A stretch of DNA of 64,000 nucleotides, from NCBI RefSeq assembly GCF_000143415.4, contig NW_003314298.1, forward strand, positions 1,209,250-1,273,249, in the 5' to 3' direction. Source of the stretch: Selaginella moellendorffii. Its lineage: Eukaryota; Plantae; Lycopodiophyta. Position numbers and translations under genes: made by a program. The notes beneath the pieces are model-generated. The model searched no databases. It was not told the DNA's origin and worked only from the letters and a program-made list of their open reading frames with translations. Positions 24,589 to 50,372 of the stretch are shown in pieces. Position 1 is the stretch's first letter. Each line of letters starts with the position of its first letter.

Positions 24589-24928
24589 CCACTCCACAAA
24601 TCGATCTACCTAGCACTAAAACCCCCAAGAAATCCGGCAAGAGAAATGCAGCGCCAGCGGCAGCCGATCGATCGACCACCCACCTCACAGCTCCATCAAA
24701 ACCCTAACCGCCAAAGCCATAGCTCGATGGTAGCGCGAAGAGAGGGACATAGCTCCTGTGGAAGAACACAAGAGAAGAAAGGCTCTATACCCACGTTCTG
24801 CCGGATTGGACAGAGGGTTTCACGTCCGACAAAGCAAAAACATTTCACAAGTCACTCAAATTCCGTGTCTCAAGTCCGCATCAAAGAATAAAATGGAGCC
24901 TCGTTTTCTTCTCCTTATTTTTTTCTTC

Positions 24929-26630
24929 TCATGGCAATGGTTCTTGCTCGTTGCCAAGCCTGTTGAGATGGAGATAGGCATCGGTTCCTGCGAGAAAGAA
25001 GAAAAACTTTAGCACAGATGCTAGAAATCTCTGGAGAGCTCACGGATGATCCAAAAACTAGCTTTAAGAGCACCAAACTTAAGGGCTAACGGATGATCTA
25101 GAAACTAGCTTTGCAAATCTATCCAAAAACTAGCTTGCAAATCTCATCCCAAACTTAAGAGCTACCGGTTATTCCAGAAACCAACTTGCAAATCTCATCC
25201 CAAACTTGAGAGCTAACGGAGCTTGCAAAAACTTCCAAGCAATCAATCCAGCATTCTAAGACTTAGAGCACTCAAATCAAACCGGAGGAACACTTACCGT
25301 AGCCTTCCATCGATATGACTTGCAAATCTCCTCCAAAGTACCTCGCGTACAGCCGACTGATTGGGAGGCCATAGCCGTAGCCAGCCATCACATTCGGCGT
25401 CTCTTGCATATGCCTGCTCTCTTCCAGCGGAGACTTTGCGGTGGTGTAGAGGTACGTCCAGATCTTTGAGAGGCCGCTCCTGGGAATCCCACCTCCTTCA
25501 TCAGATATCTAGAAAGAAAGAATTAGAACAATGCAGAAATGGTTTCCAGATGTTTAGATCACCTTCACGGTGACGTCTTCGACACCATCGGCGACGATGA
25601 TCCTGATGGGAGGAGATTCTTGGTCCGAATCCATGAAACGCTCCTGCACTGCACGGAGGGAGTTTTTCAGCAGCTCGAACAACATCTGATGGAGATGAGT
25701 GGGAACGTAGCTGCAGGAGAGACAGAACGTTAGAACTTGAGAGCCACGCGATAGCTGCTTGCAAGAATGCAAACATACCCGAAGGAGCACTTACGCGAAT
25801 GCAAAGTTTGGGTCGCCATAGACGTGCACTTCCGGAGCACTTCCATACGTACGCATGCAGGCCGATCGAGCGTCGTCAATGGCATTCTGCGCGATCAAAA
25901 CTGGGGAAACCCGGGTGGAAATCAATCCAATGTAGCCGGGTGCTGGGTTTGGCTGATGCAACGCAACATGCTGGCCTGCAAAAAGAAGTTTTCCTTTCAA
26001 AGCTCAGCCAAAATCCTAGGTGCTAGCTAGAAGAGAGAACCACGTACCAATGAGCATACGAATTCCAATTCTCGACATATAAAAGCGGTCAAGAAACTGG
26101 TGAATTTCCGGCAGCTCAAGCAAGCCCCCTCTCCTTCCCAGCTCTTCCTTGAGCTCTTGAACTCCCATAGCAACAGTCGGGGTTACGTTGTTGTGGCGAA
26201 TTTTTATCTGGTGTATCAAGTCTGTGAATTTCATCTCGTCAGCAGCGTCTTGGATCTCCGGAAACGTCCGCAAGTCTTTGAACGAGTCCACATACCAGTC
26301 ACGCACCTGGAAAGCTTACGTTATAAGATCATTTTTTTATAGCAATCAACCAGGAAGAACAAAGAAAACTAGAGACCATACCTTTAGCACGGGAGCTTTC
26401 TCTGAGAGACCATAGGGAAGATTGTCCAGCTCCATGACGCGATGCGCAAGCCTCACGGGGAGCTCCTTGTGCAAGAACTGGGAGGAGAGGAGCAAGCTCT
26501 TCTCGGTGGGATTCGCTCCAAAATCCATCATATACTTGAGACTCACGCCCGTCTGCTTCATATTGCTACACTTGTAGATATCATCCACCAGGCTCCTCGA
26601 CAGCGTCTCGGCGAGGCGGCGGACCGCCAT
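24929..26630 (-). CDS. PDK: Mitochondrial pyruvate dehydrogenase kinase, 6 exons
   Basis: [130 protein letters not shown]. Confidence 0.97.
25040..25232. repeat. Imperfect ~50 bp tandem repeat inside the last PDK intron
   Basis: Recurring ccaaacttaagagcta..cggatgat..aaactagcttgcaaatctcatc units expand this intron to ~310 nt. Confidence 0.65.
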
Positions 26631-27242
26631 ATCCGACACGAGAATCCTAGACTGCCGCAAGAAACGAGCTGGAATCACCATCGCGCGAAGAAAATCCCGC
26701 CGATTTCCGCTCGCAGCGCCATCCTAGGAGGGCGATCGAAACTCAAAGGAGCGGGCATTTTCTTGCGCTGGAATTCCTGCTCCTGGTGTTGGCGATCGAT
26801 GCTCCAGGGCGTGGCCGCCATGCATTCCCTATCATTGGCGGCAGCCAAGAACCCTATCCATACCGTCGACGCCCCTGCCAGCCGCTACCTAGAGGGGAGT
26901 CCTTGGCAAAAGCTTCTTCTCACAAACAAACACAGGCCCATCCGCCGGCTCGGCTTGTTCCACGTGTCGAACTGCCGTGCCCATGTACGGCCCACAATCA
27001 CTGTGGCTGCGACTTATGATTGAACGGGTTTTTTATTTTACATTTCACTTTTCTTCTAGGACAAATTTAAATGGTGTGATATTCCTCTTCGGATCTTGAG
27101 ATCTGGAGATAAATGGTGTGATCAACCAACCATTAACTTCAAACAAGTTCAAGCAAGTTCTTCAAAATCTCGGTCTTCCTCTTCGGATCTTGAGACTGCA
27201 GAAGGGCCTCAAGACTGGAACGTTTAGCTGGATTTTCAACAA

Positions 27243-28379
27243 ATGGCTCATTTTCTCATTCTTCTTGTGTTCTTTCTAGAGATTTCTAGTAGCCAGGGGA
27301 TTAAATTGCCTTTATGGAGTCTTAGGAAGTTCAATACAACAGGAATAAGTTCTATGCACTTTAATGAAGATGTGGGGGGCTACGTGACTGTGATCACATT
27401 CGGGAGTTTGACCAACATGCACAGCCAGCTCATGAACTTTGATTCAGGATCAGACATTTGCTGGGTGCCGATAAGAAGTTACAAACGTCGCCAGCAAGCA
27501 CTCTCTTGCCAATCCCAAATCTGCAAGAATATATTTCGTGGTGATTGTGATTCGGCAAATAGGTGCAAGTTTGATGTAGCCTATGACAGAGGCAATGCCA
27601 GAGGAATCATCATCGAAGACTCTGTAATCCTCCCAGGAGCTCGTACCGGCCAGGATTTTGTCCCACAAAACCATTTCTATTTCGGTTTTGCTCAATCTCA
27701 GCAGGGTTTAACAGCAGGGGTGGGCGTTCTTGGCATGAATAGGGGTTCATCGTCATTCATTTCCCAATTCAGAGATGCTCTAGGGGGGAATGTCTTTTCA
27801 TTTTGCATGCCGATCGAAACATCACTTTCAACCATAGCGAATGACGATGAGCAGGAATTTGGGACTTCAACTCTTGGTGATGATGCAAGGCGAGTGAATG
27901 GTTTAGCGACGGTTCCTCTTAGCGAGCAAGAGGAAGACAAAGACATGTTTTTTGTGACGATTGTCGGCTTGACTATCGATGGTGATTACATCGCAATCGC
28001 TCCACAGCTCCTCCTGATTGATACCGGTTCTACATTCACAAGCCTAACACCAACAATCTACACTCTCGTCATCCAGAAATTTCAAAACTTGCTACCAGGA
28101 AGGAAGAAAGTTATCAGCCAAGCGATGTGCTTTAGAGCTTGCGATTGTGGCCCGGTTGAAGACATTCCAAAACTAGCTTATCATTTCGATAACGGGGTTC
28201 ATATGGAATTAGTACCCCACAACTTATTTGATCGACAGGGTGATTTCTGGTGTTCTACAATTAGGAAGGGAGAAACCAACATCCTTGGTCTTGCTCATAT
28301 GATGAACATTTTGGTTCTTTTGGATTCTGATAATAGTCTGTTTGGCTTCAAGCCAAATTGTATGGGCTATGCTAAATGA
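27243..28379 (+). CDS. Secreted pepsin-like (A1, nepenthesin/atypical type) aspartic protease, intronless
   Basis: Signal peptide MAHFLILLVFFLEISSS. Both catalytic motifs present (FDSGSDICWV, IDTGSTFTSL), plus flap Y, GVLGM and NILG. Confidence 0.88.
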   Translation: MAHFLILLVFFLEISSSQGIKLPLWSLRKFNTTGISSMHFNEDVGGYVTVITFGSLTNMHSQLMNFDSGSDICWVPIRSYKRRQQALSCQSQICKNIFRGDCDSANRCKFDVAYDRGNARGIIIEDSVILPGARTGQDFVPQNHFYFGFAQSQQGLTAGVGVLGMNRGSSSFISQFRDALGGNVFSFCMPIETSLSTIANDDEQEFGTSTLGDDARRVNGLATVPLSEQEEDKDMFFVTIVGLTIDGDYIAIAPQLLLIDTGSTFTSLTPTIYTLVIQKFQNLLPGRKKVISQAMCFRACDCGPVEDIPKLAYHFDNGVHMELVPHNLFDRQGDFWCSTIRKGETNILGLAHMMNILVLLDSDNSLFGFKPNCMGYAK

Positions 28380-28490: not shown

Positions 28491-29997
28491 TCATTGATCG
28501 GCTTCGTTTGTTCGCATGAATTTGGTGTACTCTTGTTGCATCATCTCTCCGCCATTTGCTGAATCGAAGGTACATTTGTAGAAGCTAGAGCACAAAGAAA
28601 CAACACTCAGCAATCTAGAACAGCAAAACATAACAGTACCTGCCGTCTAGTCCCACAATGAGGACCGAGTTCTTCTGTGCTCCAAACGCGACAGTGGCAT
28701 GAATCTCTTCTGGGAGCCTGTACTGCGCAAACGACCATTCCGAGCTGAAGTACTTTGGTAGAACACCTGCGACAAAGCAAAACCAGCTTTCCCAGTTAGA
28801 AAACTCTGAGAAACTCGATCAAAAAACTTGACACAAACCTTTCATAAACGAAAGAGTTGAGCCAGGATTTCCACCGGGAGAGAGCGTTGGCGAGCCGGCA
28901 AACGGGCTTGTACACCCCGATCCCTGACTCCCACTCCTCTCGATGCTTTGAGCTTCAGCCGGCCTCGACTCGTCAGAAGGCGACGGACCCTTAAGTCTGA
29001 AAACATGCACGGTACCCTTGTCACTGGAAACGGCAAGCCATTGAGCGTTGGGCGAGAAGGCAATGCTGAAAATCTGTGCTCTATCTGCTCCCCTCCGCAG
29101 CTGGGAAAGCAAAAGTGAAAAGCCGAAGTTAATAGCCATCCAAAGAACCAAAAGAAAACGTCTTACCTCTTGGAGACGAGTTCCATCCATAGTGTTAAAG
29201 ATCCGGATGAGCGTCCCCTTGGTGCTGGCAGTAGCAAGGAGCTTCCCATCCTGCGAGAGACTGAAGCAAGCCAGATTGGAATCGTGCGCCGGGATGAACT
29301 TGGTTTTTCTTAGTCCGTAGTGTTCCACACGAACCTGCCCTTTGTGGAGTCCCGGACAAGCAAGAATCGGCGTCGTGGAGCTCGGGGACAATGCACACAG
29401 TCCCTTGCCGTTGGCGATCGTCTCAATCTGGTGAAGTAGCTTCAAGTCCACGAAATTGTAAACGTAGATCTTGTGCTCCAGGATCACGACTATCCTGTCC
29501 CTGCGGAGCTTCACCCCTCTAACCTCGGACCTGAATGCAAGCTCCCCAATGCAGCGGCCCTGGTGATCGTCCCAGATCATGACTTTGGTCGGAGGGTAGC
29601 GAGGGATCGGCCCACCGCCCACGATCGCGAGGATATTGCACCTAAAGAGCATCTCTACGAGCGCAATCCCTGCGTTTGGTACCTCTCGCCGGAACGTCTC
29701 CTTGAAGGGATCGCAATTGTAGATCCGGAAGCCTGTGTTTGTGCCGCACGCGAAACAACCATAGTCCTGGTTGAATGCGGCCGAGATGAGAAGCTTGGGG
29801 GCACTTGCCTGATCTTGAGCGGCAGTGCCGGCGCTAGGGTCGGAAGAATCCGTGTGCTCTACTGCTACTCCTGCTGCTGCTACCTGCGCCGGCGGCATCG
29901 GCGGCTCCTCATCACGAGATTGCTGCTGCTGTGGCGCCACCGGGTGATGATCGCCTGCCGGGAGCGCGACACCGAGGCCATTCGAGACGAGCGCCAT
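28491..29997 (-). CDS. ATG18: Autophagy-related protein 18 (ATG18a-like), copy 2, 4 exons
   Basis: Same motifs and intron positions as copy 1: [14 protein letters not shown]|[48 protein letters not shown]. Confidence 0.95.
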
Positions 29998-30028: not shown

Positions 30029-30178
30029 TTCTCAGAACGCCCTCCCTGTACCTTTATCAAAGCAAAAATTTACATTTTCCCCTTTTTAAACATGAAAAAG
30101 ATCGTAAATGCATTCGTTCTCTGAGAGTCAAAAACTAAAATTCGAATATATAATTGAAATAACAAAATCATAAAACAA

Positions 30179-31057
30179 TTATGCGGCAGCCATGATGCCC
30201 CAAAAATACGTCTTTACATTTTCTGGAATCCGCTGCCTCTTCCATGTCACAGTTTTATGCTCCCAATCAATAGTACCTCTAAAGAGCCCGTGACAGTAAC
30301 GCTTAGTAGCAAACACCATAGGAGCATAGCGCATCCCTTGCAACCTAAAAATCCACGATTTTTCTTGATCTAAAACTCCTGGAAGTTCCTCAAATTCTTC
30401 CCATTGTTTAGCTTCCTCATTGTAATAGCGAAGGTTTCCAAACTGTACAACAACCACCTTCCCTTGAACCATAGTCATCGTTGCACCATAGTGCTTAAAC
30501 TCTTTAGGGAGGTCAGCATAAAGCTCTGCCCAGGAATTCTGACCTGCATTGTAATACCTCAATTCTCTGTTTTCATACAAGCCAATCACACGATCTGCGC
30601 CGTTTGAGATCACATTCGTAATTATCCCTAATGTATCTAAACCAGCCACACGTCCAATTTTTACCCACTTGTCTTCACTTGCTGAGTATACCTGAGTCTT
30701 GTTTACTCCAAAGGCATGAATTGTATCTTCATCAACTGTAGCATAATACTGCTGACCAGGCTTCATGAAAGCTGTTGAGATTGTTGTCCACTTGAGGCCA
30801 TCATCTTTCAGGTTCATTTTGTAAAGGGCTGGCCGTCCTGGGTTTGGACGGCACTTTTGAGGATATTTCCGCATCCCCCGTACAGGAACCAACTTGACTA
30901 CGAAGACATGGAGATTACCCCCTGCAGAAGCATGAATTGCAGCCACACGCTCATCTGCTTCTAGCTGCACTTGCTCCAATTCTGTCCATGCTTCTGTTTC
31001 AATATCAAGATGTAAGATGCGTACATCATCGTCATAAAACAGCAAAATCAAACCCAT
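30179..31057 (-). CDS. Intronless Kelch-like beta-propeller protein without F-box, copy 1 (292 aa)
   Basis: Repeated Y-x5/6-W blade signatures (YSASEDKW, YNAGQNSW, YNEEAKQW). Full ORF is conserved in copy 2, with 9 of 292 residues different. Confidence 0.7.
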   Translation of the reverse strand: MGLILLFYDDDVRILHLDIETEAWTELEQVQLEADERVAAIHASAGGNLHVFVVKLVPVRGMRKYPQKCRPNPGRPALYKMNLKDDGLKWTTISTAFMKPGQQYYATVDEDTIHAFGVNKTQVYSASEDKWVKIGRVAGLDTLGIITNVISNGADRVIGLYENRELRYYNAGQNSWAELYADLPKEFKHYGATMTMVQGKVVVVQFGNLRYYNEEAKQWEEFEELPGVLDQEKSWIFRLQGMRYAPMVFATKRYCHGLFRGTIDWEHKTVTWKRQRIPENVKTYFWGIMAAA

Positions 31058-31170
31058 TCCTACGACTTACCCTAAGGATTGTTGCCCTTAAATATATGGA
31101 AGGTAAACATAAATCGAATATGCTAATATCCTTGTCCCCAAAACTTAAGTAAAACCGACATGGAAACACA

Positions 31171-31506
31171 GGGAGAATCCGTGACCAGGATTTCGGCTGG
31201 TGCGTGGAGCCTACCGATCAATTTAAAACCCCAAGAAATAATGTAGCAATCGATCGAGCGTCCACTCCAAGAAAGAAATCCTTCCCTCTATACCCACATT
31301 CTGCTGGATTGGAGTGACGAGCTGAGTACCGGAAAATATGCTCCCCGACGCTCCATCTGCTCGCAGCACGATGGCGATCCACATTGCATTTTCTTGCACT
31401 GGAATCTAGCGCATACTTGTTGTAGCTCCAGGCCGTGGCATTCCGGTGGCGGCAGCCAAGAGCCAAGAGCCACAGCCGATCCGCTGGCTCGGCTTGTTCC
31501 ACGTGC
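31171..31506 (-). repeat. Chimeric deleted copy of ATG18-1 5' region fused to PDK 5'/upstream region, unit 1
   Basis: Shares GGGAGAATCCGTGACC, GGATTTCGGCTGG and CTCTATACCCAC..GGATTGGA with 24511-24810, and GCATTTTCTTG, TGGCGGCAGCCAAGA and GGCTCGGCTTGTTCCACGTG with 26660-26966. Confidence 0.85.
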
Positions 31507-31509
31507 CTT

Positions 31510-32060
31510 CATGTTCACAAAGCGAAGCGGCACCCTTCTTCAGATTCAGAAGACGCTTCCACTGGAAGAAGAAGTTCCTTAGGCTGCTCAGCTTGAGACA
31601 TTCCAAGGAGCTCCTTGCCGTGCTTCTGTAGCATCACCTGGCCACTCTTGCTGGCCACTTGATGTCAACCTTGTTCATGAAATACGGGTATCACCCAACC
31701 CCCTCCACAGCAGCCCAGTCGAAGCCAATGAATTTGACCTATACTTGCCTGCTGGGATAACTGACCCTCACCATCACGTTCACATCTCTAACATCTCCAT
31801 GCACCCCAATGTCACCTGTGACTGGGATTCCGTGTGCTTTGTCTTGTGCCTGTGGGTGCCCATGAAGTGGACACCAGTCCTCCCCTAGGTACTCCAAATT
31901 CACTTGCACCCATCCTCTAGGAAGCTGGTCTATATTATAGCTGAGGAGCCAGCCTAACCTCTTCAGCTGCCCAAGCCCTGTGCACAGCTTCCCATAAGAA
32001 CCTTGAGTGTACTTATGTCCTAGATGAGAAAAACCAATATTCTTACACTTTTTTAATAGC
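31510..32060 (-). pseudogene. Decayed fungal/Crinkler-type protein kinase fragment, unit 1
   Basis: LP.GWVQVNLEYL..VHGDVRDVNVMV..KFIGFDWAAVEG..YPYFMNKVDIKWPA; frameshifted. Confidence 0.7.
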
Positions 32061-33170
32061 TGATTTGTTAATCCCAAAAACATTTTTATTTTCTTAAGTT
32101 AATACAAATTAGTGAAAGGGTTCTAACTTACTTTAGTTTAGTACATAGTTTGTATGATGCAACTTAAAAAAGAGATATTAACTTTTTGGGCTAAAGCAAT
32201 TGAGTTAAATAAAGTTTGGAGTTGATGTAAAAAAGTGGCCATTGCACTTTTTTAAAAAAAGTGATCCTTATGACTTTCTTTTGTAACATTATGCTTAGTT
32301 AAATGAGGTTTTTATTCTCTAGAAAAACCAACTTTGGGCTGAGTTTTGTTAAGGCACAAAACCGGCAAAGAGCCATAATAGAAAGTTTCGTTATACACAA
32401 AACCAATGAAGAGCAATAGGTAGTCTTCACATGAAGGTACTTCTAGAAAACCTCTAAGTGTTAAGAGGTCAGTCTTGAAAGGGGAATTGCTCATGAACTT
32501 ATTTTTTTTGATCCCCAAAAGGAGAAAGGGGTCAATCTTGAGAGGAGAGTTGCTTATAAGTTTAATGGCCCATGCTATTGTGATTGTGGAATCCAAAACA
32601 CCATCTATCCATTGGTGTTCACAATCACTCGTGAATACTTGCCTCTCTTGATTCCTTCAAAGGGCATGCCTTACATCATCTTTTGCTTCATTGAGTCTCT
32701 CAGCCAAAGTACATTAAACCATGTGTATTCCTTGAAACCATGGAGGTACATTGCTCTCCTTTGATTTCCTCTTATGCACTTTCATATCTGCCCCAACTGT
32801 AAGCTATTGATGATTAGACCCTATTGAGACTCAATACCATTATATTGCTCTTGTCGGTGTTGAGTGCTTTTGTTGGTGCCTTTGCTCGGATCTCTTCAAA
32901 AACGAGTGACAACTCTGACTAACAACCTTGATAAAGGTCTCTATCAAAACTTGTACCTTTGAAGTATGGTCATCCATACACTTGTGCCATTGCTAGATAT
33001 GTACATGAGTCACAAACCTTGAAATCCTTGTGAAGGGACTTGGGCCAAATTCATGTTTCCACTCTTTGGTAGGATGGACATTTATCTTGAGTGTCTTCAT
33101 AGCTAGGGCCAAAAACACCCAAACTTATTCATCATCACTAAACACCCTCATTTGCCATAGAGAAGCTAAA

Positions 33171-34036
33171 AGTTTGCCAAAGTGTTGGTGACAGAATCCT
33201 CCTCATGTGAGGAGCTTTATTTCCAAACCTCCACCATTATTGACCTTGAAGAAGCTCACAAGAAGAACCACCTCCTCAAGAAGTCCTCAAAACCGACACA
33301 CTTGAACCAAGGTCACACACGACACCATCACTTCAAATTCTTAATCTTTGGCAAAAATCACCTTACAAGTCTTAGGGATGAGGAGGATTTCCTTTACCTT
33401 GCTTGAGCTCACCATTGTCCATGGAACAAGCCTCCAATCCCCCAAAAAAAGAATTATGGAGTAACAAATTACAAGTCTAAGCAACAAGTCGAGGACTCAA
33501 ATATTTAGATCTCTTTCTTCCACCATTTGATCTTCTTGAAATTCTAAAGGCATAATCTCTATAACCAGGTTTAGCTTCTCACTAACGTGATCTAAGATGT
33601 AGAGAAGTTGAAGGTTTGCCAAAGTGTTGGTGATGGAATTGTCCTCACGTGGGGAACTTTGTTTCCACACCTCCACCACTGCTAACCTTGAAGAAGCTCA
33701 CAAGAAGAGCCACCTCCTTGAAAAGTCTTCAAGACCGATACACTTGAAGCAAGGTTACACACGACACCATCACTACAAGCTCCTAATCCTTGGCAAGAAT
33801 CATCTTACAAGTCTTAGGGATGAGGAGGATCTCTTTCACCTTGCTTGAGCTCACCACTGTCTATGAAGCAAGCCTCCAGACCCCCAAAAAGAGAACCATG
33901 GAGTAATGAATGACAAGTCTAAGCAACAAGTTGAGGACTCAAATACTTAAATCTTCTTTCTCCACCATTTGATCTTCCTGAAATTCTAAAGGCATAATCT
34001 CTATAACTAAGTTCAGCTTCTAACCGACATGATCTA
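33171..34036. repeat. Two-copy direct tandem repeat, period ~442 bp
   Basis: 33171-33597 and 33613-34036 align; the parallel ORFs are MLVTESSSCEELYF and MLVMELSSRGELCF. Confidence 0.9.
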
Positions 34037-36829
34037 GAAACAAATGCATCAACTAAGAGAGCCAGCCATTTGAACTTACATTGAATTTCATTTGCTTGAA
34101 CTATATTACTTGAGTAGACAAATCTCACAACCCAACTATTAAATCTTTGTGAAACCTTGTAAGTACAATCTTCCTAGTGTCTTCTAGTTTTTCACTAGAG
34201 CAATTTTCAGTCAAATGGCACATAAAGCAGCCACAATTGACCCATTCTCACCTTAAACCTTAGCCACCAAATTGATTAAGCATTATACTTAGTGGTAACC
34301 TTGCATGTCATTAAACACTATGATAATAGTGAGCTCTCATTGATCTTGATTTGGTCTTGGTAAACTTATATCTTAGTTAATGATGGTGATGTTTAACTTA
34401 GTTATTTGAGGTTGAGGTGTTAGTACTTATATTGTAACTTTGTTTATTATGAGGTTGTGTACATATATGAATTCATCCCATGGTCTTCATTTTAGTTTCT
34501 GATGAGTGTTAATTATGCAAGTTAGTCTTTTCAAGACATGCTCAAAGTTATTGGCTAGATGTGTTGGTATGCTTATTGTAGTTGAGTTGGATTTGAGTAA
34601 TCATTTTAACTATGCTTGTCCATCTTTCTATATCTTGTACTTAAGGTATTACCTTCATATTAAACAAGTATACAACTTGATGACATGAATTTAATATTTA
34701 AGTTTTGTGAAGGCAAGTTGAAGAGTGATTGTTTAGGTTTGCTTTATCAAATGGTATTGCAGATGATTGTATTGATAAATTTACATGGCTTTTCCATATT
34801 AGCATGTTGATTTTACTTTGTTAATAACATTTAATTGCATTTAGTCTATGGTGTTAAATTTTATTAAGCCTTGGACGTAGTGATTCACTCATTGATAATG
34901 TATTTATTATTTGTAGCTAAGTATTGTTGAAGGATTAATTTAAGGTATCTTTGACTTTGGTTTAGCTTGGTTGCTAAAGAGTGTTGAATGGTAATTCACT
35001 CTTACTTTTAACTATATTTTGGTGTTGATAACATTGAAGTGGTGCATTGATATTGACATTATTGACATTGAGATTAGAGAGAGATAAAATGCCTTTTCAT
35101 AAGATTGATATTAAGTTTCATTAATCTTGATGCAGATAGTGTTAATAATTTTGTTGTAGCTTTATATCGTTAGCATTTATGCACTTACTAGTTAGTTACT
35201 ATATTGACTTTCAAATGAGTTAAGTGGCAAGTTTGAGTTAATTATGTTCTAGATAAATTTGTTTAGTTGAGTTCAACTTTACCTTCTTATTGAGAAATGA
35301 TTTAGTCATGGACATTACTAGTCTTGCAAGAGGAAGAGTTAGTGATCAATATTGAAGTGATTGAATCTTTATTAAATTTATGTTGGGATTATATCGATCA
35401 TTGATGATTCTTATTGCACTTATTATAAAGTGAATCACATTGTATTATAAAAAATGGATTCATGGAGGATTGTTTAATAATCATTTGTTGAGCAAAACTT
35501 TGTTGTGCTTGTTTTTTAGATTGATGCAAACATGCTCTTCATTAGCTTTTGTATCACAAAATTTAATTTATAAATATATTGAGAAGGATATTATGGGTTG
35601 TACCATAATTTTATTTTTTGCATTGAAGTTAGTTTGTGTGAAACTTGTGATGCTCAAAAACGATGCCATGGAAAACCACTGCCATTGCTATTATAAGCTA
35701 ATGCTCCACACTTTCGATCGCATTCCACCGAGGGGGCTCTTTACCCGGGCGTCTGCCGCTACCGGGTGTGCTCTATGAGTCGAGTTGATCTCATCGTGCG
35801 TCTCCCAAGCTAGACATTTTCAAACTACATGCACAAGCACTGCTTTTCTCCGGTATGTATGGTTCTTCTTGTGCTCATTTTGCTTATACTCTTGTCTAGA
35901 TCGATTTTCCATGCATTGTGGTCACTCCACGCCGGACCTGGTATACTTTTGATCTGCCCTTTGGAAACTTTTGAGAAAGCTTGCTCTCGTTTGAGCTCAA
36001 TCAAGCCTCTCACATCATGGCCATAGTTTTGGCACCCAAAACCAAGTGTTTGAAGACAAGCTTCACTACCAAGATCACCACCCATTCCATGAGGTGTGAC
36101 TTGTTTATATTGAATCTAAGATTTTCTTTAAGAGCTTCCCTGGTTTATTGGATTTCTGGTGCAACCCTGGAGTTTTTCTTGTTGAGTAAACTTTCACGGT
36201 TTGGAGCAATATATTATTGCTAGGAAAAGGCATCAAACTTGGAGCTAGAGTACAGGATTTGAAAGAATTGAAACCAATGGACCTCCAGCTTTGACAATAG
36301 ATGGGACCATGGATCAAATCAAACTCGAGCTCAAACAAGCCATCTTCCAGGACACTACCTTAAACGAATGTTGCTGGTTCTTGTTGCAGCATACTTATAT
36401 TTTGCTTCTCAGAAGTAGCTTTTGCATCAGTTGCTTGCTCAGATTGAGACGCAGAGTCCATCCAACCCACTTTGTTTGCCATGGCCTCGGGATTTTAAAT
36501 AAAACGTGTCCCAAAACACAAGTGAGAGTTCCATTCCATCGAGAAGAGAATGGTTTCTTTCTTGAGCTTGACAGCAGCAACGAACTGAGCACCGTGCTCA
36601 GAATTTGTGCCTACAAAACAAAAAAGCTTGCGCTGCTGTACGGTATACGTTAAGAAGCAATTAGTGTACACTTTGGACGGGAACCTGGTGGCCGGATATC
36701 TGGCTAGAATAAAGAAATGTATCACAGGTTCGAATCCACAGCCAGAGACCCAATCAAAATTCTTTTGTCTGAACGGAATGCTCTTCGATCCCTAGGGTTT
36801 GGCTCTTGGATCGCGCAATATTCCCTTTC

Positions 36830-37800
36830 ACTGGCAAATGCGCGCAGCAAGAACACACGAGGCATTCGATCGACGCGGCGTCAATCTTGTTCGATTGAAT
36901 GCCCCAGAGAAATCCTGTGTCCTGCAACACAGTCGAACAATCCTACATCCGGACCTCCAATCGCGGCCAGGTAAACAAGATCTTTGATTCTATGCCGCAT
37001 CATGAGGTGGTTGCTTGGAACTCACTCATTACACTGTATGCCCAGTCCGGGCATCTTGAGCTTTCCAAGAACACGGAGTTCCGTCTCTTGGAACCGCGCT
37101 TGTGGCAGCATCCCGTATCCGTGACTGAGAGTCTATGTTTGATTGCTTCTCAGAGCGCCATGGAACTCGATGATAATGGCGCTCGCGCACCAGGGGCAAA
37201 TTGTGGCAGCGAAATCGACCGTCGACAAAATGTCGGCCAAGGATCTCGTGTCCTACCACTGTGCTACGCCCAGAATGACAGGATGTTCCATCGGTTCCCC
37301 TTCACCAGTACAGCGGTGAATACCAGAGGGGGGTTTTTCTGTATTTTACTTTTGCGAATGGAGTGGAGACGTATGGAGCGTTGGAGGGCGCGAGAGAGAT
37401 CTTTGATTTCATGCCGGATCAAGACGTGGTGCGTGGACGGCGATGACGACAGCCACCAGGGCTTCGTCGCCCTCACGAAGAACATCTTTGATCAAATCCC
37501 GGAGAAGAATCCAGTACCGTGGATCGTCGCATTTGCCATTTTGACGAGGCCGTTCACGAGATCCTGCGCAAGACCAGTGTCTGCTGGATCACGCAACTTT
37601 CAACTTGAGCACCATGTTGGAGAGCATGAAGATGTGCACCTTGGTTTCCTGGACAACCAATGCTCAGAACGGGCACTATGATCGAGCAGTGGAAATCTTC
37701 CAGCTTATGAATCTCGAGGGTGTCAAGCCGGACGAGTTGATGTTCCGGAGCGTTCTAACTTTGTGCAGCCATGTTGGTCTAGTAGCCGAGTTGGTACTCA
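36830..37800 (+). pseudogene. PLS-class PPR pseudogene (inverted duplicate of 13400-14330)
   Basis: FDSMPHHEVVAWNSLITLYAQSGHLE..IFDQIPEKNPVPW..AQNGHYDRAVEIFQLMNLEGVKPDELMFRSVLTLCSHVGLV. Confidence 0.85.
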
Positions 37801-38039
37801 CTTCGATTGCTTTTACCATTTGCTTTTTGAGATCATACACACATAATAAGGGAAATACATCTGAATATCTCCTTTCCATAACTAAGATTGAGGGAAAGTC
37901 CTATGCTTCTCATCCTTTTGCAGCTGATTTATTTAAGCCTTCGTGTAGATAAGAGGCTTATATAGTGTGCTGCTGGTATCACCACACCAATAGAGACTAC
38001 GCTCAAGCATCACACCACACTATCAATCTGTGATTGTTT

Positions 38040-39382
38040 AATGAAAAGTGAACTTCTTCTAATACCAGTGATCACATATAAGATATAATCCAATAGCTAG
38101 TTCGCTAGTTTCTAGTTTGTGTTCATATTCTTCGCGGATCCTCTCCATCTCTTTGAAGAACAAGAGTTTTGGAGCTAAGCAGTGTCACCTGATCTCGCCC
38201 AAAGAGGACGTGGTACACATCCTCGACTTGCTTTCGGTCACAGCGTGATATTCCTGCAGTACACATGGCCTGCAATGTTGATGTGCACGGCATCTGTATG
38301 ACTATAACAAGATAAATCTCATATTTTGTAGCAGTTGTTGTCTTTCTGGCAAACCAGTGTTGCATAGCTTGGTCTGTCCAATATTGGTTGTTCCAATTAT
38401 TGGATAGAACGTCTTCCAGGTCTAATCCCAGGTGTTCCATCCATTCTTGCAATTCCTTCCACTGTGGTTCATGCTGGATGAAGTTTGTGTGAAGTGCTTC
38501 TAACATACCCCAGATAATACATATCGGGGTAGTCCTGGAGCTGTGACTTCACATGCATAAAGGGCAACTGGTGGCACTTTAGCATTATAGAATAGTCTTC
38601 CAATCTGTGACTGTATTATTATGACAGTCTGACTAGAAACTATTATATACTTTGTGCGGCTTTCACATGATCTTTGACACCTTCAGTCCATGTTCCTTGT
38701 TTGTGCACGTATCCTAGGTATTTGCAAGCTTGTGTCTCTTCCACAAGCTCACCATATCCTGGAAGATAATATCTGCGTTTTGCCCAAGTATACTTGCACT
38801 CCTGCCTTCACACAGAAGCTCGCGAGTGTGTCTGCATCCGGGGCAACCAGCAGCAAGTCGTCAGCATATAGAAGCGAGTATACGATAATTCTTCTCCTTT
38901 AATATCACTTCCAACGCTCCAATGTATATTGCAAACAACGTAGGGGAGAGTGGACACTTTTGCATATGGTTGATGACCATTAAAGATTTGTAGTTTCACC
39001 AATTTGTAAAGCTCAATGATGGCAGCTCAATGATGTCTGTCAAATACCTTGGCAAGTCGATATAACCACTTTGAAGCTTTGAAGCGAAGATTCATTTTCT
39101 AGTTCTTATCAAAACAAAGTGAATCTCTATAACTCTGGGAGTCGTTGCCTCTAGGATTCCCATGTACAATTCAAACTGGGAAAATCCAGTCCCTGGGCGT
39201 TCAAGATCACCTTTTGGTGTGACGCAGCCATTGGATCTATTGCCAAGTGGTGGCCACCCAGATAGAAATTTCTAGGATTGTCCAGGCGACGCTCTCGAGA
39301 GAGATCAATGCTACCTATAGCTCCTCTCTTTATGTGGTGGCTTTGCACCATTTCTTTGTACTTAACAGATGAGATAAGATCT
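38040..39382 (-). mobile_element. LINE reverse transcriptase relic (inverted duplicate)
   Basis: Minus strand reads SLLYADDLLL (~38850-38878) and KYLG (~38712), followed by the C..C..EDVYHVLF zinc-finger remnant. Confidence 0.78.
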
Positions 39383-39547
39383 TGTTAGAGCCACATGGCA
39401 TACAGCCACCTGGCTTGAGTCGTGATCCACTTACATTTTCCCTTTTTTAAACATGAAAAAGTCGTAAATGCATTCGTCCTCGCCGACAAAAGAGTCAAAA
39501 AACCAAAAATTCGAATATATAATTGAAATAACAAAATAATAAAACAA

Positions 39548-40426
39548 TTATGCGGCAGCCATGATGCCCCAAAAATACGTCCTTACATTTTCTGGAATCC
39601 GCTGCCTCTTCCATGTCACAGTTCTATGCTCCCAATCAATAGTACCTCTAAAGAGCCCGTGACAGTAACGCTTAGTAGCAAACACCACAGGAGCATAGCG
39701 CATCCCTTGCAACCTAAAAATCCACGATTTTTCTTGATCTAAAACTCCTGGAAGTTCCTCAAATTCTTCCCATTGTTTAGCTTCCTCATTGTAATAGCGA
39801 AGGTTTCCAGACTGTACAACAACCACCTTCCCTTGAACCATAGTCATCTTTGCACCATAGTGCTTAAACTCTTTAGGGAGGTCAGCATAAAGCTCTGCCC
39901 AGGAATTTTGACCCGCATTGTAATACCTCAATTCTCTACTTTCATATAACCCAATCACACGATCTGCCCCGTTCGAGATCACATTCGTAATTATCCCTAA
40001 TGTATCTAAACCAGCCACACGTCCAATTTTTACCCACTTGTCTTCACTTGCTGAGTATACCTGAGTCTTGTTTACTCCAAAGGCATGAATTGTATCTTCA
40101 TCAACTGTAGCATAATACTGCTGACCTGGCTTCATGAAAGCTGTTGAGATTGTTGTCCACTTGAGGCCATCATCTTTCAGGTTCATTTTGTAAAGGGCTG
40201 GCCGTCCTGGATTTGGAGGGCACTTTTGAGGATATTTCCGCATCCCCCGTACAGGAACCAACTTGACTACGAAGACATGGAGATTACCGCCTGCAGAAGC
40301 ATGAATTGCAGCCACACGCTCATCTGCTTCTAGTTGCACTTGCTCCAATTCTGTCCATGTTTCTGTTTCAATGTCAAGATGTAAGATGCGCACATCATTG
40401 TCATAAAACAGCAAAATCAAACCCAT
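39548..40426 (-). CDS. Intronless Kelch-like beta-propeller protein, copy 2 (292 aa)
   Basis: Intact ORF nearly identical to 30179-31057. Confidence 0.7.
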   Translation of the reverse strand: MGLILLFYDNDVRILHLDIETETWTELEQVQLEADERVAAIHASAGGNLHVFVVKLVPVRGMRKYPQKCPPNPGRPALYKMNLKDDGLKWTTISTAFMKPGQQYYATVDEDTIHAFGVNKTQVYSASEDKWVKIGRVAGLDTLGIITNVISNGADRVIGLYESRELRYYNAGQNSWAELYADLPKEFKHYGAKMTMVQGKVVVVQSGNLRYYNEEAKQWEEFEELPGVLDQEKSWIFRLQGMRYAPVVFATKRYCHGLFRGTIDWEHRTVTWKRQRIPENVRTYFWGIMAAA

Positions 40427-40606
40427 TCCTACGACTTACCCTAAGGATTGTTGCCCTTAAATATATGGAAGTCTAAAAGTGTAAACTACAAATCGAATAT
40501 GCTATATCCTTATCCCCAAAACTTAAGTAAAACCGACATGAAGCACAGGAAACACAGACAACAAGAAAAGAGATAGAATTGGAGCCAGTTGGAAAAACAG
40601 CCATCA

Positions 40607-40957
40607 GGGAGAATCCGTGACCAGGATTTCGGCTGGCGTGCGGAGACTACCGATCAATCTAAAACCCCAGAAAATAATGCGGCGATCGATCGAGCGTCCA
40701 CTCCAAGAAAGAAACCCTTTCCTCTATACCCACATTCTGCTGGATTGGAGTGATACGAGCTGAGTACCGGAAAATATGTTCCCTGACGCTCCATCCGCTC
40801 GCAGTGCGATGGCGATCCACATTGCATTTTCTTGTGCTGGAATCTAGCGCATACTTGTTGTAGCCGGTGATCGATGCTCCAGGCCATGGCATTCCGGTGG
40901 CGGCAGCCAAGAGCCAAGAGCCACAGCCGATCCGCTGGCTCGGCTTGTTCCACGTGC
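40607..40957 (-). repeat. ATG18/PDK 5'-region chimera, unit 2
   Basis: Same blocks as unit 1, plus GCGGAGACTA (matches ~24572) and GATCGATGCTCCAGG (matches ~26794). Confidence 0.88.
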
Positions 40958-40959
40958 CT

Positions 40960-42030
40960 TCATGTTCACAAAGCGAAGCGGCACCCTTCTTCAGATTCGG
41001 AAGACGCTTCCACTGGAAGAAGAAGTTCCTTAGGCTGCTCAGCTTGAGACATGCCAAGGAGTTCCTTGTCATGCTTCTGTAGCATCACGCCACCCGACAC
41101 TCCTGCCGGCCACTTGATGTCAACCTTGTTCATGAAAGACGGGTATCGCCCAACCCCCTCCACAGCAGCCCAGTCGAAGCCAATGAATTTGACCTCAACT
41201 TGCCTGCTGGGATAACTGACCCTCACCATCACGTTCACGTCTCTAATGTCTCCATGCACCCCAATGTCACCTGAGGGCGTGACTGGGATTCTGTGTGCTT
41301 TGTCTAGCATCTTGAGCACCTCGGCCCACAACTCTTGTGCCTGCTGGTGCCCATGAAGCAGATGCCAGTCCTCCCCTAGGTACTCTATCTTCACTTGCAA
41401 CCATCCTCCAGGAAGCTGGTCCATGTTGTATAGTTGAGGAGCCAGCCTAACCTCTTCAGCTGCCCAAGCCCTGTGCATAGCTTCCCTGTAAGAACCTTGA
41501 GATCTATTTATTATTTTGCCCAAAATTGATTGCATTACCAATGTTTTTACACTTTTCCAATGGCTAATCTATTTATTATTTTGCCCAAAATCCATTTCAT
41601 TTTCGTAAACTAATACAAATTCCATAACAAATAACAAGTTAGATCTATAAGCAATAATTAAAGGCCATTATTCACCCATGCTTGTAAACTTTGCAAGTTA
41701 TGTAGTTGAACTTTATGCTGGAATAGGTGGTACTTCTGGAGAAAAGATTTACCATAGACCAATCTATCCTTCTAAGCTTGTTTTGGTGGCATATTATAAT
41801 TTTGCATGTAATCTGGTTTTGAGATTGAGTCTTTGTAGTAGTCATACAAGCCAGCAAGCCAATACAGCAATAATTCCTCCCCTTTGATCATCACTTCCCA
41901 TGCTCCAATGTATATATAAATGTGGTTGCTAAAGATTTTGAGTTTCACCAATCGTGTTTTGGAGTGTTCATTTCCAGGAGCTGAATGCAATGGTACCACA
42001 GGATCTTTATTGATAAGGCATGGTCTCATG
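40960..42030 (-). pseudogene. Decayed fungal/Crinkler-type kinase gene, unit 2
   Basis: SYREAMHRAWAAEE..LAPQLY..LPGGWLQVKIEYL..VHGDIRDVNVMV..VKFIGFDWA..GRYPSFMNKVDIKWPAGVSGG..HDKELL. Upstream fragments DPVVPL..LAGLYDYYK. Confidence 0.72.
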
Positions 42031-42216
42031 CCTCCAGCTCAGCGCTAATGACCTTTATAAACATGTATACATTGGATAATACTTAGCAATGATCTCACAC
42101 GACAATTCGTTTTCGTTTCCAAACTCCTTTGGAAGAACATGAAAAAAGATTATAGTTCCAGTCAAAAGAGTTTTAAGATTCGAAGAATATATATATATAT
42201 ATTTGAAATTAAAAAT

Positions 42217-43095
42217 TTATGCGGCAGCCATGATGCCAATAAAATACGTCTTTACATTTTCTGAAATCCGCTGCCTTTTCCATGTCACAGTTTTGTGCTC
42301 CCAATCAATAGTACCTCTAAAGAGCCCATGACAGTGACGCTTCGTAGCAAACACCACAGGAGCATAGCGCATCCCTTGCAACCTAAAAATCCACGATTTT
42401 TCTTGATCTAAAACTCCTGGAAGTTCCTCAAATTCTTCCCATTGTTTAGCTTCCTCATTGTAATAGCGAAGGTTTCCAGACTGTACAACAACCACCTTCC
42501 CTTGAACCATAGTCATCTTTGCACCATAGTGCTTAAACTCTTAAGGGAGGTCAGCATAAAGCTCTGCCTAGGAATTCTGACCTGCATTGTAATACCTCAA
42601 TTCTCTACTTTCATATAACCCAATCACACGATCTGCCCCGTTCGAGATCACATTCGTAATTATCCCTAATGTATCTAAACCAGCCACACGTCCAATTTTT
42701 ACCCACTTGTCTTCACTTGCTGAGCATACCTGAGTCTTGTTTACTCCAAAGGCATGAATTGTATCTTCATCAACTGTAGCATAATACTGCTGACCTGGCT
42801 TCATGAAAGCTGTTGAGATTGTTGTCCACTTGAGGCCATCATCTTTCAGGTTCATTTTGTAAAGGGCTGGCCGTCCTGGATTTGGAGGGCACTTTTGAGG
42901 ATATTTCCGCATCCCCCATACAGGAACCAACTTCACTACGAAGACATGGAGATTACCGCCTGCAGAAGCATGAATTGCAGCCACACGCTCATCTGCTTCT
43001 AGTTGCACTTGCTCCAATTCTGTCCATGTTTCTGTTTCAATGTCAAGATGTAAGATGCGCACATCATTGTCATAAAACAGCAAAATCAAACCCAT
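42217..43095 (-). pseudogene. Kelch-like gene copy 3 with single in-frame nonsense codon
   Basis: TGG>TAG at 42568-42570 splits an otherwise colinear 292-codon frame. Confidence 0.85.
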
Positions 43096-43260
43096 TCCTA
43101 CGACTTACCCTAAGGATTGTTGCCCTTAAATATATGTGTAAACTATAAATCGAATATGCTAATATAAACTTAAGTAAAACCGACATGAAGCACAGGAAAC
43201 ACAGACAATAAGAAAAGAGATAGAATTGGAGCCAGTTGTAGATCCGGAAGACAGCCATCA

Positions 43261-43599
43261 GGGAGAATCCGTGACCAGGATTTCGGCTGGCGTGCGGAGG
43301 CTACCGGTCAATCTAAAACCCCAGGAAATAATGCAGCGATCGATCCAAGAAAGAAACCCTTTCCTCTATACCCACATTCTGCTGGATTGGAGTGATACGA
43401 GCTGAGTACCGGAAAATATGTTCCCTGACGCTCCATCCGCTCGCAGTGCGATGGCGATCCACATTGCATTTTCTTGTGCTGGAATCTAGCGCATACTTGT
43501 TGTAGCCGGTGATCGATGCTCCAGGCCATGGCATTCCGGTGGCGGCAGCCAAGAGCCAAGAGCCACAGCCGATCCGCTGGCTCGGCTTGTTCCACGTGC
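43261..43599 (-). repeat. ATG18/PDK 5'-region chimera, unit 3
   Basis: Near-identical to 40607-40957. Confidence 0.88.
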
Positions 43600-44710
43600 C
43601 TTCATGTTCACAAAGCGAAGCGGCACCCTTCTTCAGATTCGGAAGACGCTTCCACTGGAAGAAGAAGTTCCTTAGGCTGCTCAGCTCGAGACATGCCAAG
43701 GAGTTCCTTGTCATGCTTCTGTAGCATCACCTGGCCACCCGACACTCCTGCCGGCCACTTGATGTCAACCTTGTTCATGAAATACGGGCATCGCCCAACC
43801 CCCTCCACAGCAGCCCAGTCGAAGTCAATGAATTTGACCTCCACTTGCCTGCTGGGATAACTGACCCTCACCATCATGTTCACGTCTCTAATGTCTTCAT
43901 GCACCCCAATGTCACCTGAGGGCGTGATTGGGATTCCGTGTGCTTTGTCTAGCATCTTGAGCTCCTCGGCCCACAACTCTTGTGCCTGCTGGTGCCCATG
44001 AAGCAGATGCTAGTCCTCCCCTAGGTACTCTATCTTCACTTGCAAGATAGATAGACCAGCATCCTCCAGGAAGCTGGTCAATGTTGTACAGCTGAGGAGC
44101 CAGCCTAACCTCTTCAACTGCCCAAGCCCTATGCATAGCTTCCCTGTAAGAACCTTGAGTGTGCTTGATGACCATGTCCTGGATGAGAAAAACCAATGTT
44201 TTTACACTTTTCCAATGGCTGATCTGTTTATTATTTTGCTCAAAATCCATTTTATTTTTGTAAATTAATACAAACTCCATAACAAATAACAAGTTAAATC
44301 TATAAGCAATAATTAAAGGCCATTATTCATCCATGCTTGTAGAGTTTGCAAGTTATGTAGTTGAACTTTATGCTGGAATAGGTGGTACTTCTGGAGAAAA
44401 GATTTACCATAGACCAATCTATCCTTCTAAGCTTATTTTGGTGGCATATTATAATTTTGCATGTAATCTGGTTTTGAGATTGAGTCTTTGTAGTAGTCGT
44501 ACAAGCCAGCTAGCCAATATAACAATAGTTCTTCCCCTTTGATCATCACTTCCCATGCTCCAATGTATATAAAACAACTTCACAGAGTGTGGTTGCTAAA
44601 GATTTTGAGCTTCACCAATCGTGTTTTGGAGTGTTCATTTCCAGGAGCTGAATGCAATGGTACCACAGGTGGCATTTACCAGATCTTTATTGATAAGGCA
44701 TGGTCTCATA
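43600..44710 (-). pseudogene. Decayed fungal/Crinkler-type kinase gene, unit 3
   Basis: KTLVFLIQDMVIKHTQGSYREAMHRAWA..LAPQLY..(frameshift)..VHEDIRDVNMMV..VKFIDFDWA..KWPAGVSGGQVMLQKHD. Confidence 0.72.
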
Positions 44711-44711
44711 A

Positions 44712-44875
44712 GATGCAGATATCATCGTCATGAAACAGCAAAATCAAACCCATTCCTAGGACTTACCCTAAGGATTGTTGCCCTAAAGTCTTTTAATGGG
44801 CTTAAGAATATTCTAAGGATGAAGATAAAGGCTGTAATTTTTAAAACTATAAATCGAATATGCCAATATCCTTAT
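44712..44875 (-). pseudogene. 5' stub of a fourth Kelch-like copy
   Basis: Reads MGLILLFHDDDICIL* with the same upstream sequence (cattcctaggacttaccctaaggattgttgccct); joined directly to the kinase relic. Confidence 0.75.
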
Positions 44876-45076
44876 CCGCATCCACCAAATATCGGACGGT
44901 CACGTGACGGTGACGTATTTTCAGACCTTCAACAGCCCGTCAACCCGTCAACCAGGTTGGGTTTGTGTGATATTAAACACAGATTAGTGCTAATTGCCAT
45001 ACATTTTGGAGCAACAGAGGAGCTAGGTTGAGAGACGAGAGCTTTCGCTGTTAGAGAGGAGCCTTGGGAGCGCGCG

Positions 45077-48950: not shown

Positions 48951-50372
48951 ATGAAGGTCGTCCCAGCCTCCGCCATGCACCGCGGCATCCATTCTATGCA
49001 GGTAGAGTGTTTTGTTCTTGGTACCTCTTGGGTTTAGAGTTTCTTTGGTAGTTCTTGAGTTATTCGTGACGAATTCTTTGGTAGTTCTCGTGACGAATTC
49101 TTTCTTTTGTCACAGGCTGAGAGCGCGCTGTGCTACTGCGGCGTGGACGCTGGCCTCACCGTCACCAACGCCCGGCGATTCGTGCCGGGGACGCGGCACT
49201 GCATCCAGCCCGACGTCAAGCCGACAATTGTGATCCCAAAGGCGAGGACGAGGCACTCGAGGGGCGACCGGACCAAGATCCCGTGCCAGCTTATCCCGGG
49301 CCTCCCAGACGACCTCGCCATCGCATGCCTGGTAAGAGTTCCTCGCATCCATCACAGGACTCTCCGGGTGGTTTGCAAGAGGTGGTACAGGCTCCTCGCC
49401 GGCAACTTCTTCTACTCGCAGCGCAAGGCCCTGGGGATGGCCGAGGAGTGGATCTACGTGATCAAACGCGACAGGGACGGGCACATCTCCTGGCACGCAT
49501 TCGATCCTCGCTACCAGCAGTGGCAGCCACTCCCGCCGGTCCCTCTCGAGTACTGCGAGGCGCTGGGCTTCGGCTGCGCGGTGCTCAGCGGCTGCCACCT
49601 TTACCTCTTCGGAGGCAAAGACCCGGCAAAAGGCTCCATGAGGAGAGTCGTCTACTACAGCGCCCGGACCAACAAGTGGCACCGAGCCCCGGACATGAAC
49701 CGCCGCCGCCACTTCTTCGGCTGCTGCGTGATCAACAACTGCCTCTACGTCGCGGGTGGCGAGTGCGAGGGCGTGCAGCGATCGCTGCGCTCGGCCGAGG
49801 TCTACGACCCGAACAAGAACAGGTGGTCATACATTGCGGACATGAGCACGGCGATGGTTCCGTTCATCGGGGTGGTGTACCACGGCCGGTGGTTTCTCAA
49901 GGGGCTGGGCTCGCACAGGCAGGTGATGAGCGAGGTCTACGTCCCGGCCACGGACAACTGGTCGCCGGTGCTCGACGGGATGGTGTCCGGGTGGAGGAAC
50001 CCGAGCGCCATCTTCAACGGGCAGCTCTACGCGCTCGACTGCCCCGATGGTTGCAAGCTCCGGGTTTACGACGGCGCCGCTGATTCCTGGCACCGCTCCG
50101 TGGACAGCCGGACTCACCTGGGGAACTCGCGGGCGCTGGAGGCGGCGGCGCTGCTGCCGCTGGGGGGGCGGCTGTGCATCATCCGCAACAACATGAGCAT
50201 CACCATGGTGGACGTGGCCAACTCCGAGGACGCGGCGCGGCGCGGCGCGCTCTGGGACACCATCGCCGGCAAGGGGCTGTTCAAGACGTTCGTCACCAAC
50301 TTGTGGTCCAACATCGCGGGGAGGAACCGTCTCAAGAGCCACATTGTCCATTGCCAGGTTCTTCAAGCGTGA
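48951..50372 (+). CDS. SAGL1: F-box/Kelch-repeat protein, At1g55270 (SAGL1)-like; intron 49002-49115
   Basis: CYCGVDAGL..RFVPG..CIQPD N-terminus, F-box LIPGLPDDLAIACL, Kelch repeats, and C-terminal KSHIVHCQVLQA* typical of this clade. Confidence 0.9.

Follow-up and report, generated by a model that had tools for sequence, protein, structure and literature searches.

A probable young, locally amplified cluster of an intronless Kelch-like gene with recruited upstream DNA in Selaginella moellendorffii

Introduction

Plant genomes often contain tandem clusters in which lineage-specific genes and pseudogenes are intermingled, and young chimeric genes that arose when a partial duplication recruited regulatory DNA nearby are known from Drosophila and rice. 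A candidate cluster of this kind was analyzed in a 64,000-nt stretch of the lycophyte Selaginella moellendorffii (assembly GCF_000143415.4, contig NW_003314298.1, positions 1,209,250 to 1,273,249 of the forward strand), referred to as the window, within which all positions below are counted. The cluster consists of a cassette repeated three times on the minus strand (units u1, u2 and u3) plus a stub of a fourth copy, and each cassette joins a kinase-like relic, a fragment resembling the 5′ regions of a pyruvate dehydrogenase kinase (PDK) gene and of an ATG18 gene, and an intronless, Kelch-like open reading frame (ORF) of 292 codons.

The ORF product resembles plant F-box/Kelch proteins (PF25210 type, e.g., the At1g55270 orthologue) in being intronless and in its apparent ~45-aa repeats with a hydrophobic-Y-x(5-6)-W motif, and is unlike them in being an orphan without an F-box, at 25 vs. 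70 bits and without detectable relatives outside the species. With stand-alone Kelch propellers, such as the plant epithiospecifier and nitrile-specifier proteins and the bacterial NanM epimerase, it shares a putatively Kelch-only composition, a length in the range of ~290-350 aa and the absence of a ligase-recruiting domain, but the likeness of the orphan to these proteins falls short of significance, and an alignment of catalytic or metal-binding residues could not be made. As in chimeric young genes, unrelated fragments appear juxtaposed, with one part kept by selection and the rest decaying; unlike in those genes, two stacked 5′ regions would have been recruited, the gene body between them deleted, and the chimera amplified three to four times. 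The kinase-like part keeps the HxDxxxxN loop and DFD motif of small atypical kinases (Kdo/RIO/APH-like), with 160-220-aa kinases of fungi and giant viruses as the nearest clusters by language-model features, but the relic has no hidden Markov model or sequence match to any kinase family, and every copy is broken. CR proteins (Crinkler/CR-type kinase domains) are reported from land plants (PMC5289972, review).

The reading favored here, at a probability of roughly 0.6, is that of a young, locally amplified cluster, restricted to S. moellendorffii, in which a selected ORF and recruited upstream DNA were brought together from unrelated parts. Local segmental and tandem duplication would have made the cluster. 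Its working part would be the intronless 292-codon gene. The encoded protein, lacking an F-box and built of about six repeats like those of Kelch proteins, would stand alone and may act as a propeller that binds proteins without connection to an SCF ligase. The copies in u1 and u2 would be intact and under purifying selection, that in u3 a recent pseudogene, and the fourth reduced to the stub. A dead small atypical kinase gene and a deleted copy of the PDK-ATG18 locus would have been copied along in each unit as passengers, with the recruited DNA, especially a nearly invariant G-box block, as putative upstream regulation of the Kelch-like gene. A young, locally amplified family built from unrelated parts had been proposed in an original prediction made from the DNA letters, and the distinct junctions and the PDK/ATG18 homology described below support it.

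Within 15 kb, a selected gene, a decaying gene and regulatory DNA would thus have been copied by the same duplications, so that three fates can be compared at equal age and gene birth and turnover can be followed in a lycophyte in a dated case with its own internal controls. The locus would be a natural example of promoter capture if the G-box block drives the Kelch-like gene, and the orphan protein is a candidate for the study of repeat-protein divergence beyond recognition. Current views are not overturned; the cluster is a clear example of young cluster formation and not a new kind of system.

Probable selection on the 292-codon ORF

Both u1 and u2 have an intact ORF, and 22 base differences (13 synonymous and 9 nonsynonymous) separate the two. 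They involve 9 residue changes and no indels, and on these two points the original prediction was right. For this pair, the synonymous differences (Sd = 13) and nonsynonymous differences (Nd = 9) correspond to substitution rates per site of dS = 0.072 and dN = 0.013, and to a dN/dS of 0.18. The probability of 9 or fewer replacements among 22 changes was ~0.001-0.002, calculated with a transition share of ~0.6-0.7 taken from the neighboring kinase relic. The third ORF had been credited with a single stop; this was wrong, as premature stops are present at both codon 176 (TAG) and codon 185 (TAA). Comparisons with this copy gave a dN/dS of 0.23 for u1 vs. u3 and of 0.35 for u2 vs. u3, the latter not significantly under neutrality, as would be expected if u3 died recently.

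At 0.072, dS matches the 5-8.5% substitution divergence of the relic next to the ORF, and the overall divergence of the ORF is 2.5%; the low ORF divergence therefore reflects constraint, not recent gene conversion. Indels point the same way. None was found over the 879 nt of the ORF in any pair, vs. 3-8 events per pair in 573 nt of kinase relic, with u1 and u2 separated by 8 events in the relic and 0 in the ORF. In the last 144 codons of the relic, u2 and u3 differ by Sd = 1 and Nd = 9, plus a stop. An open frame of 292 codons is very improbable by chance in DNA of 46% G+C. Purifying selection on the u1 and u2 ORFs since their divergence is supported, with the kinase part apparently unconstrained, and the earlier claim of selection on the Kelch-like ORF is borne out by both dN/dS and the indel comparison with the flanks.

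Structure of the units

Read 5′ to 3′, each unit is composed of the kinase-like relic, a ~360-nt non-coding fragment, ~170 nt of proximal upstream DNA and the 292-codon ORF (Table 1). Self-BLAST of the window returned the cassette repeats at E = 0, with 87.9% identity over 2193 columns between u1 (30070-32110) and u2 (39431-41621), and 93.3% over 2540 columns between u2 (39538-42029) and u3 (42207-44709). Positions 44709-44787 of the stub match the 5′ end of each ORF by self-BLAST, and a profile search lengthened the stub to 44880. The units u2 and u3 stand in tandem with a period of ~2.67 kb and have an extra 5′ segment of 408 nt in common; an 8-nt microhomology marks the joint between the stub and the first base of u3, and u1 stops 73 nt short of the ATG18-B start codon (29997), on its upstream side. 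The repeats are direct and in a single orientation; they share one locus, diverge to graded degrees and have junctions that can be identified, as in local tandem and segmental duplication. The predicted minus-strand order of kinase relic, PDK/ATG18 5′ chimera and 292-aa ORF in three units and a stub was recovered throughout, as was the predicted ~7.3-kb block of repeats between u1 and u2.

Table 1. Features of the cluster and its surroundings; positions are those of the window, and 5′-fragments were found by profile search
Feature	Positions	Strand	Remarks
Unit 1 (u1)	30070-32110	minus	kinase relic, PDK/ATG18 5′ fragment, Kelch-like gene, 3′ flank
Unit 2 (u2)	39431-42029	minus	Joint Genome Institute (JGI) model SELMODRAFT_418303 fuses u2 with downstream debris
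Unit 3 (u3)	42207-44709	minus	JGI model SELMODRAFT_418304 splices around stops
Stub	44709-44880	minus	~125 nt of proximal upstream DNA and 15 codons of fourth Kelch-like copy
5′ segment common to u2 and u3 only	41622-42029	minus	self-comparison
Junction between u3 and u2	42030-42206	strandless	177 nt; unrelated to 3′ flank shared by u1 and u2
Spacer u1-u2	32111-39430	strandless	7.3 kb, holds repeats
Kelch-like ORF, copy 1 (u1)	30179-31057	minus	intact, 292 aa; no gene model in protein collection
Kelch-like ORF, copy 2 (u2)	39548-40426	minus	intact, 292 aa; TATA-like element 40458-40466
Kelch-like pseudogene, copy 3 (u3)	42217-43095	minus	stops at codons 176 and 185, no indels
u1 kinase-like relic	31515-32110	minus	at least 2 frameshifts, in-frame stop, 30- and 6-nt deletions, DFD to GFD
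u2 kinase-like relic	40966-41621	minus	191-codon open piece, HGDIRDVN and GFD; N-lobe lost
u3 kinase-like relic	43608-44292	minus	DFD kept, HGD to HED, 13-nt insertion, stop
u1 PDK-5′-like fragment	31352-31507	minus	profile search; G-box CACGTG at 31500
u1 ATG18-5′-like fragment	31171-31314	minus	profile search
u2 PDK-5′-like fragment	40790-40958	minus	matches 26968-26704, all upstream of PDK ATG (26681)
u2 ATG18-A-5′-like fragment	40599-40750	minus	matches 24811-24503; ATG18 start codons deleted
u3 PDK-5′-like fragment	43432-43600	minus	profile search; G-box at 43593
u3 ATG18-5′-like fragment	43253-43392	minus	profile search
121-nt block	40880-41000 (u2)	minus	0-1.7% diverged among three units; G-box 40951-40956
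Source-like locus upstream of multi-exon PDK gene	26704-26968	minus	profile match
Source-like locus, ATG18-A upstream DNA and ~first 30 codons	24503-24811	minus	profile match
Tandem repeat, 2 x 442 bp	33158-34036		within 7.3-kb spacer; 86% match; AT-rich spacer; contains CACGTG
Inverted duplicate of 11891-15448	35652-39382		within 7.3-kb spacer; LINE-like reverse transcriptase and PPR debris
ATG18-A (PROPPIN)	23443-24597	minus	nearly one open frame
Multi-exon PDK gene	~25270-26681	minus	between ATG18 paralogues
TAXi-type aspartyl protease gene	27243-28379	plus	between ATG18 paralogues
ATG18-B paralogue (PROPPIN)	28819-29997	minus	nearly one open frame
F-box/Kelch gene, At1g55270 orthologue	49107-50372	plus	intronless; GC3 0.88
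PPR protein gene	50977-53736	minus	919 aa, intronless, many PPR repeats, apparently intact

A chimera of PDK and ATG18 5′ regions had been predicted in the units, and it was confirmed by searching the window with a profile of the three unit spacers. The profile matched the PDK 5′ region at 26968-26930 (E = 2.7e-5) and 26853-26704 (E = 3.2e-13), and the ATG18-A 5′ region at 24811-24783 (E = 7e-5) and 24730-24503 (E = 1.3e-8). These four matches elsewhere in the window are collinear and on the same strand, and the source genes lie 13-16 kb away. By homology, the unit spacer is a copy of the PDK-ATG18 locus that has lost the 1.9-kb PDK body and keeps both 5′ regions. The 121-nt block diverges far less among the units than its flanks (5-8%), and its CACGTG G-box is also found in the PDK upstream region; a TATA-like element stands ~40 nt before the ATG of each Kelch-like ORF. 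As a structured RNA the block was rejected (no Rfam match, fold z = -0.15). Spacer ORFs used as exons in the JGI models were likewise rejected as coding, since their frames are disrupted from unit to unit by indels of 13 and 2 nt.

The kinase part had been predicted to be disrupted or to carry a substituted catalytic motif in every copy, and this holds in u1, u2 and u3. Read from the ORF pieces, an HxDxxxxN loop is followed in the correct order by a DFD-type motif, as in protein kinases. In the Atlas, which compares language-model features, the 191-aa piece scored 0.98 with 208 features shared with Kdo/Pkinase/RIO/APH clusters, among small kinases of fungi and Nucleocytoviricota. No match to the kinase pieces was found in Pfam, NCBIfam, PDB or by word search, and AlphaFold2 (AF2) gave a predicted local distance difference test (pLDDT) of 35. 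General Pfam scans of the 5′ segment, made without profiles of the CR kinase or REase domains, recognized no Crinkler header or nuclease domain upstream of the relic. The likeness would be that of a generic small atypical kinase, with the Crinkler type of the original prediction as a candidate label.

The 7.3-kb spacer holds one arm of a 3.6-kb inverted duplicate (11891-15448 vs. 35652-39382, ~81% identity, arms 20 kb apart). Its debris includes the YADD motif of a long interspersed nuclear element (LINE)-like reverse transcriptase, in the tail of model 418303, and pieces of a pentatricopeptide repeat (PPR) pseudogene. A 160-nt piece of the units' 5′ segment was found in the spacer at 38872-39032, with a counterpart at 12238-12393 in the other arm, which suggests that the three units were formerly contiguous.

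As a further observation, u2 and u3 start at the identical base (42029 and 44709) despite differing DNA before them, which would fit a recombination hot spot or the end of an element. A 22-nt palindromic pair with a CACGTG G-box is located immediately upstream of the stub, at 44887-44920, and may represent what originally stood upstream of the outermost Kelch-like copy.

The encoded protein

The sole Pfam match of the 292-aa protein was Kelch_FKB95 (PF25210), at E = 1.3e-5 and 6.5e-5 and confined to residues 90-206. In the Atlas, the nearest clusters were Kelch_1 (0.91), and the best named clusters were all Kelch, with recognition below the usual level. Internal repeats of ~45 aa were detected between residues 154-196 and 197-249 (z = 6.2) and between 111-153 and 154-196 (z = 3.4), the remaining pairs not being significant, and a W-centered motif recurs six times (residues 24, 90, 131, 176, 219 and 265-272) at a spacing of 41-66 residues. 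Faint matches were obtained to NCBIfam NF010730 (NanM, Kelch fold; E = 0.053) and to PDB entry 5gq0 (E = 0.58). These results weakly suggest that the product is a Kelch-like repeat protein.

The predicted absence of an F-box was upheld. Pfam gave no PF00646 match in the 292-aa protein, and there is no room for the domain, as the first repeat motif begins at residue 12 and an in-frame TAA stands 12 nt before the ATG. The 180 nt upstream of the ORF carry non-triplet indels between units. The role of an F-box-less propeller as a substrate decoy or in defense, as suggested in the original prediction, is putative.

A phmmer search with the 292-aa protein against 1.84 billion representative proteins returned nothing beyond its own family. 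Likewise, the only protein relatives found by word search were SELMODRAFT entries of S. moellendorffii, to which exact look-ups added no members, and the protein collection held no Logan-derived protein of the family. The ORF was also considered as a diverged or frame-shifted ATG18 body, given its position 3′ of the ATG18 5′ fragment, and this was rejected, as nhmmer, tblastx and blastp found nothing. Derivation from the neighboring F-box/Kelch gene was unsupported (best BLASTP E = 0.009, on one repeat).

Public gene models and the other haplotype

The S. moellendorffii assembly holds two haplotypes of ~106 Mb each (PMC7801247). Two models on a 1.71-Mb scaffold, 418303 and 418304, are gene-model fusions that cover u2 and u3 of the window, respectively, and the family models 411138 and 411142 are located on a separate 2.76-Mb scaffold. 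On the latter, the F-box/Kelch model SELMODRAFT_411144 is 100% identical to the window ORF at 49107-50372 and falls in one 90% cluster with 443893 of the window's scaffold, the accession order being alike on both scaffolds. The syntenic models 411138, 411142 and 411144 therefore represent the other haplotype, assembled separately.

Judged by its residues, 411142 is the partner of u3, with 8 differences between them. Its internal gap corresponds exactly to a 45-nt GT..AG stretch in u3, which encodes part of a repeat and contains the codon-176 stop; the modeller probably spliced around a stop shared with u3. Near its N-terminus, 411142 agrees with the stub and not with u3 (H8, D10, I12), a hint that the haplotypes differ in structure. 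I12 and I53 are present in both copies of the other haplotype, vs. V12 and V53 in all three window copies, a pattern that would fit gene conversion among the copies within a haplotype. The public models at this locus are artefactual: two fuse relic, spacer and ORF through invented introns, and one drops the 45-nt 'intron'. The intact u1 ORF has no public gene model, and no paper was found on the four SELMODRAFT identifiers of the family.

Alternative explanations

Several results weigh against a selected Kelch-like gene with recruited regulation. The PF25210 scores (25.5 and 23.1 bits) are below the curated cut-off of 70 bits, so that the E-value is significant with the threshold unmet, and the match vanishes in the longer fused gene models; AF2 on a 5-sequence alignment gave no usable model (pLDDT 37, predicted template modelling score 0.33), and hhalign against the neighboring F-box/Kelch family was not significant (E = 0.11). 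The name Kelch, as originally predicted, is thus favored by the Pfam E-value, the Atlas and the internal repeats, and disfavored by the bit score and the structure prediction. The G+C content at third codon positions (GC3) of the ORF is 0.40 vs. 0.62-0.88 in conserved neighbors; low GC3 is usual in young or weakly expressed genes. A regulatory role of the recruited DNA, chiefly the G-box block, is putative and is read only from conservation. Model 411138 pairs with u1 at 12 differences, 8 of them private to 411138 and including W235R, and both other-haplotype models are without codons 163-177. Of the 5 copies known from both haplotypes together, 3 appear disrupted, and intactness can be demonstrated only for u1 and u2. 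The cluster could also be decaying debris as a whole, in which the 292-codon ORF was recently a gene, is now dispensable, and has intact copies that have not yet been hit; the two stops in u3, the 'intron' needed by the other-haplotype models, the private replacements of the u1 allele, the missing u1 model, the lack of a Logan-derived family protein in the collection and the low GC3 all lean that way. This is considered unlikely, because a dN/dS of 0.18 (P ~0.001-0.002) in copies free of indels between indel-rich flanks implies constraint over most of the time since duplication. It is improbable, too, that the ORF was recently born or is foreign, could be expressed only behind the stacked PDK/ATG18 regulatory fragments, is polymorphic in copy number and integrity between haplotypes, and yields an F-box-less propeller with a lineage-specific role in stress or defense, e.g., in sequestering the targets of F-box/Kelch ligases.

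Origin and assembly raise other alternatives to the local amplification favored here. That the cassette was cargo of a gene-capturing DNA transposon or Helitron-like element and was then multiplied would account for the common starting base of u2 and u3 after differing upstream DNA, for parts that are fragments of unrelated genes, and for the transposable element debris alongside. However, the units are not bounded by terminal inverted repeats or target-site duplications, the copies known from protein-collection searches are confined to the window locus and its allele, and the genes that supplied the captured 5′ regions are only 13-16 kb distant, as in local rearrangement, which leaves this explanation quite improbable. 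A foreign source of the kinase and the Kelch-like gene, in integrated giant-virus or fungal DNA that was later domesticated, is very improbable. Both genes are intronless and without plant relatives, GC3 is low, the kinase piece is nearest to small kinases of fungi and Nucleocytoviricota by language-model features, and ORFs like those of nucleocytoplasmic large DNA viruses have been reported in S. moellendorffii (PMC4083422); against this, viral contigs gave nothing for either protein, no relative, viral or other, was present among the 1.84 billion representatives, the flanks are ordinary plant genes, and Atlas taxa are not evidence of transfer. Finally, the copies could be two haplotypes collapsed into one scaffold, given that the assembly contains both. 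This concern, which the original prediction had itself raised, is close to refuted: the second haplotype has its own 2.76-Mb scaffold with the syntenic models, and the units differ from one another by 2-9%, carry many indels besides and have distinct junctions. On these grounds the three units are judged to be true paralogues and not mis-assembled haplotypes.

Neighboring genes

The PDK gene and the aspartyl protease gene lie between two PROPPIN/ATG18 paralogues that are ~75% identical at the DNA level, and a PPR gene follows the F-box/Kelch gene on the other side of the cluster. Only 5 kb separate the conserved F-box/Kelch gene at 49107-50372 from the Kelch-like orphans, whose fast evolution stands in sharp contrast to it.

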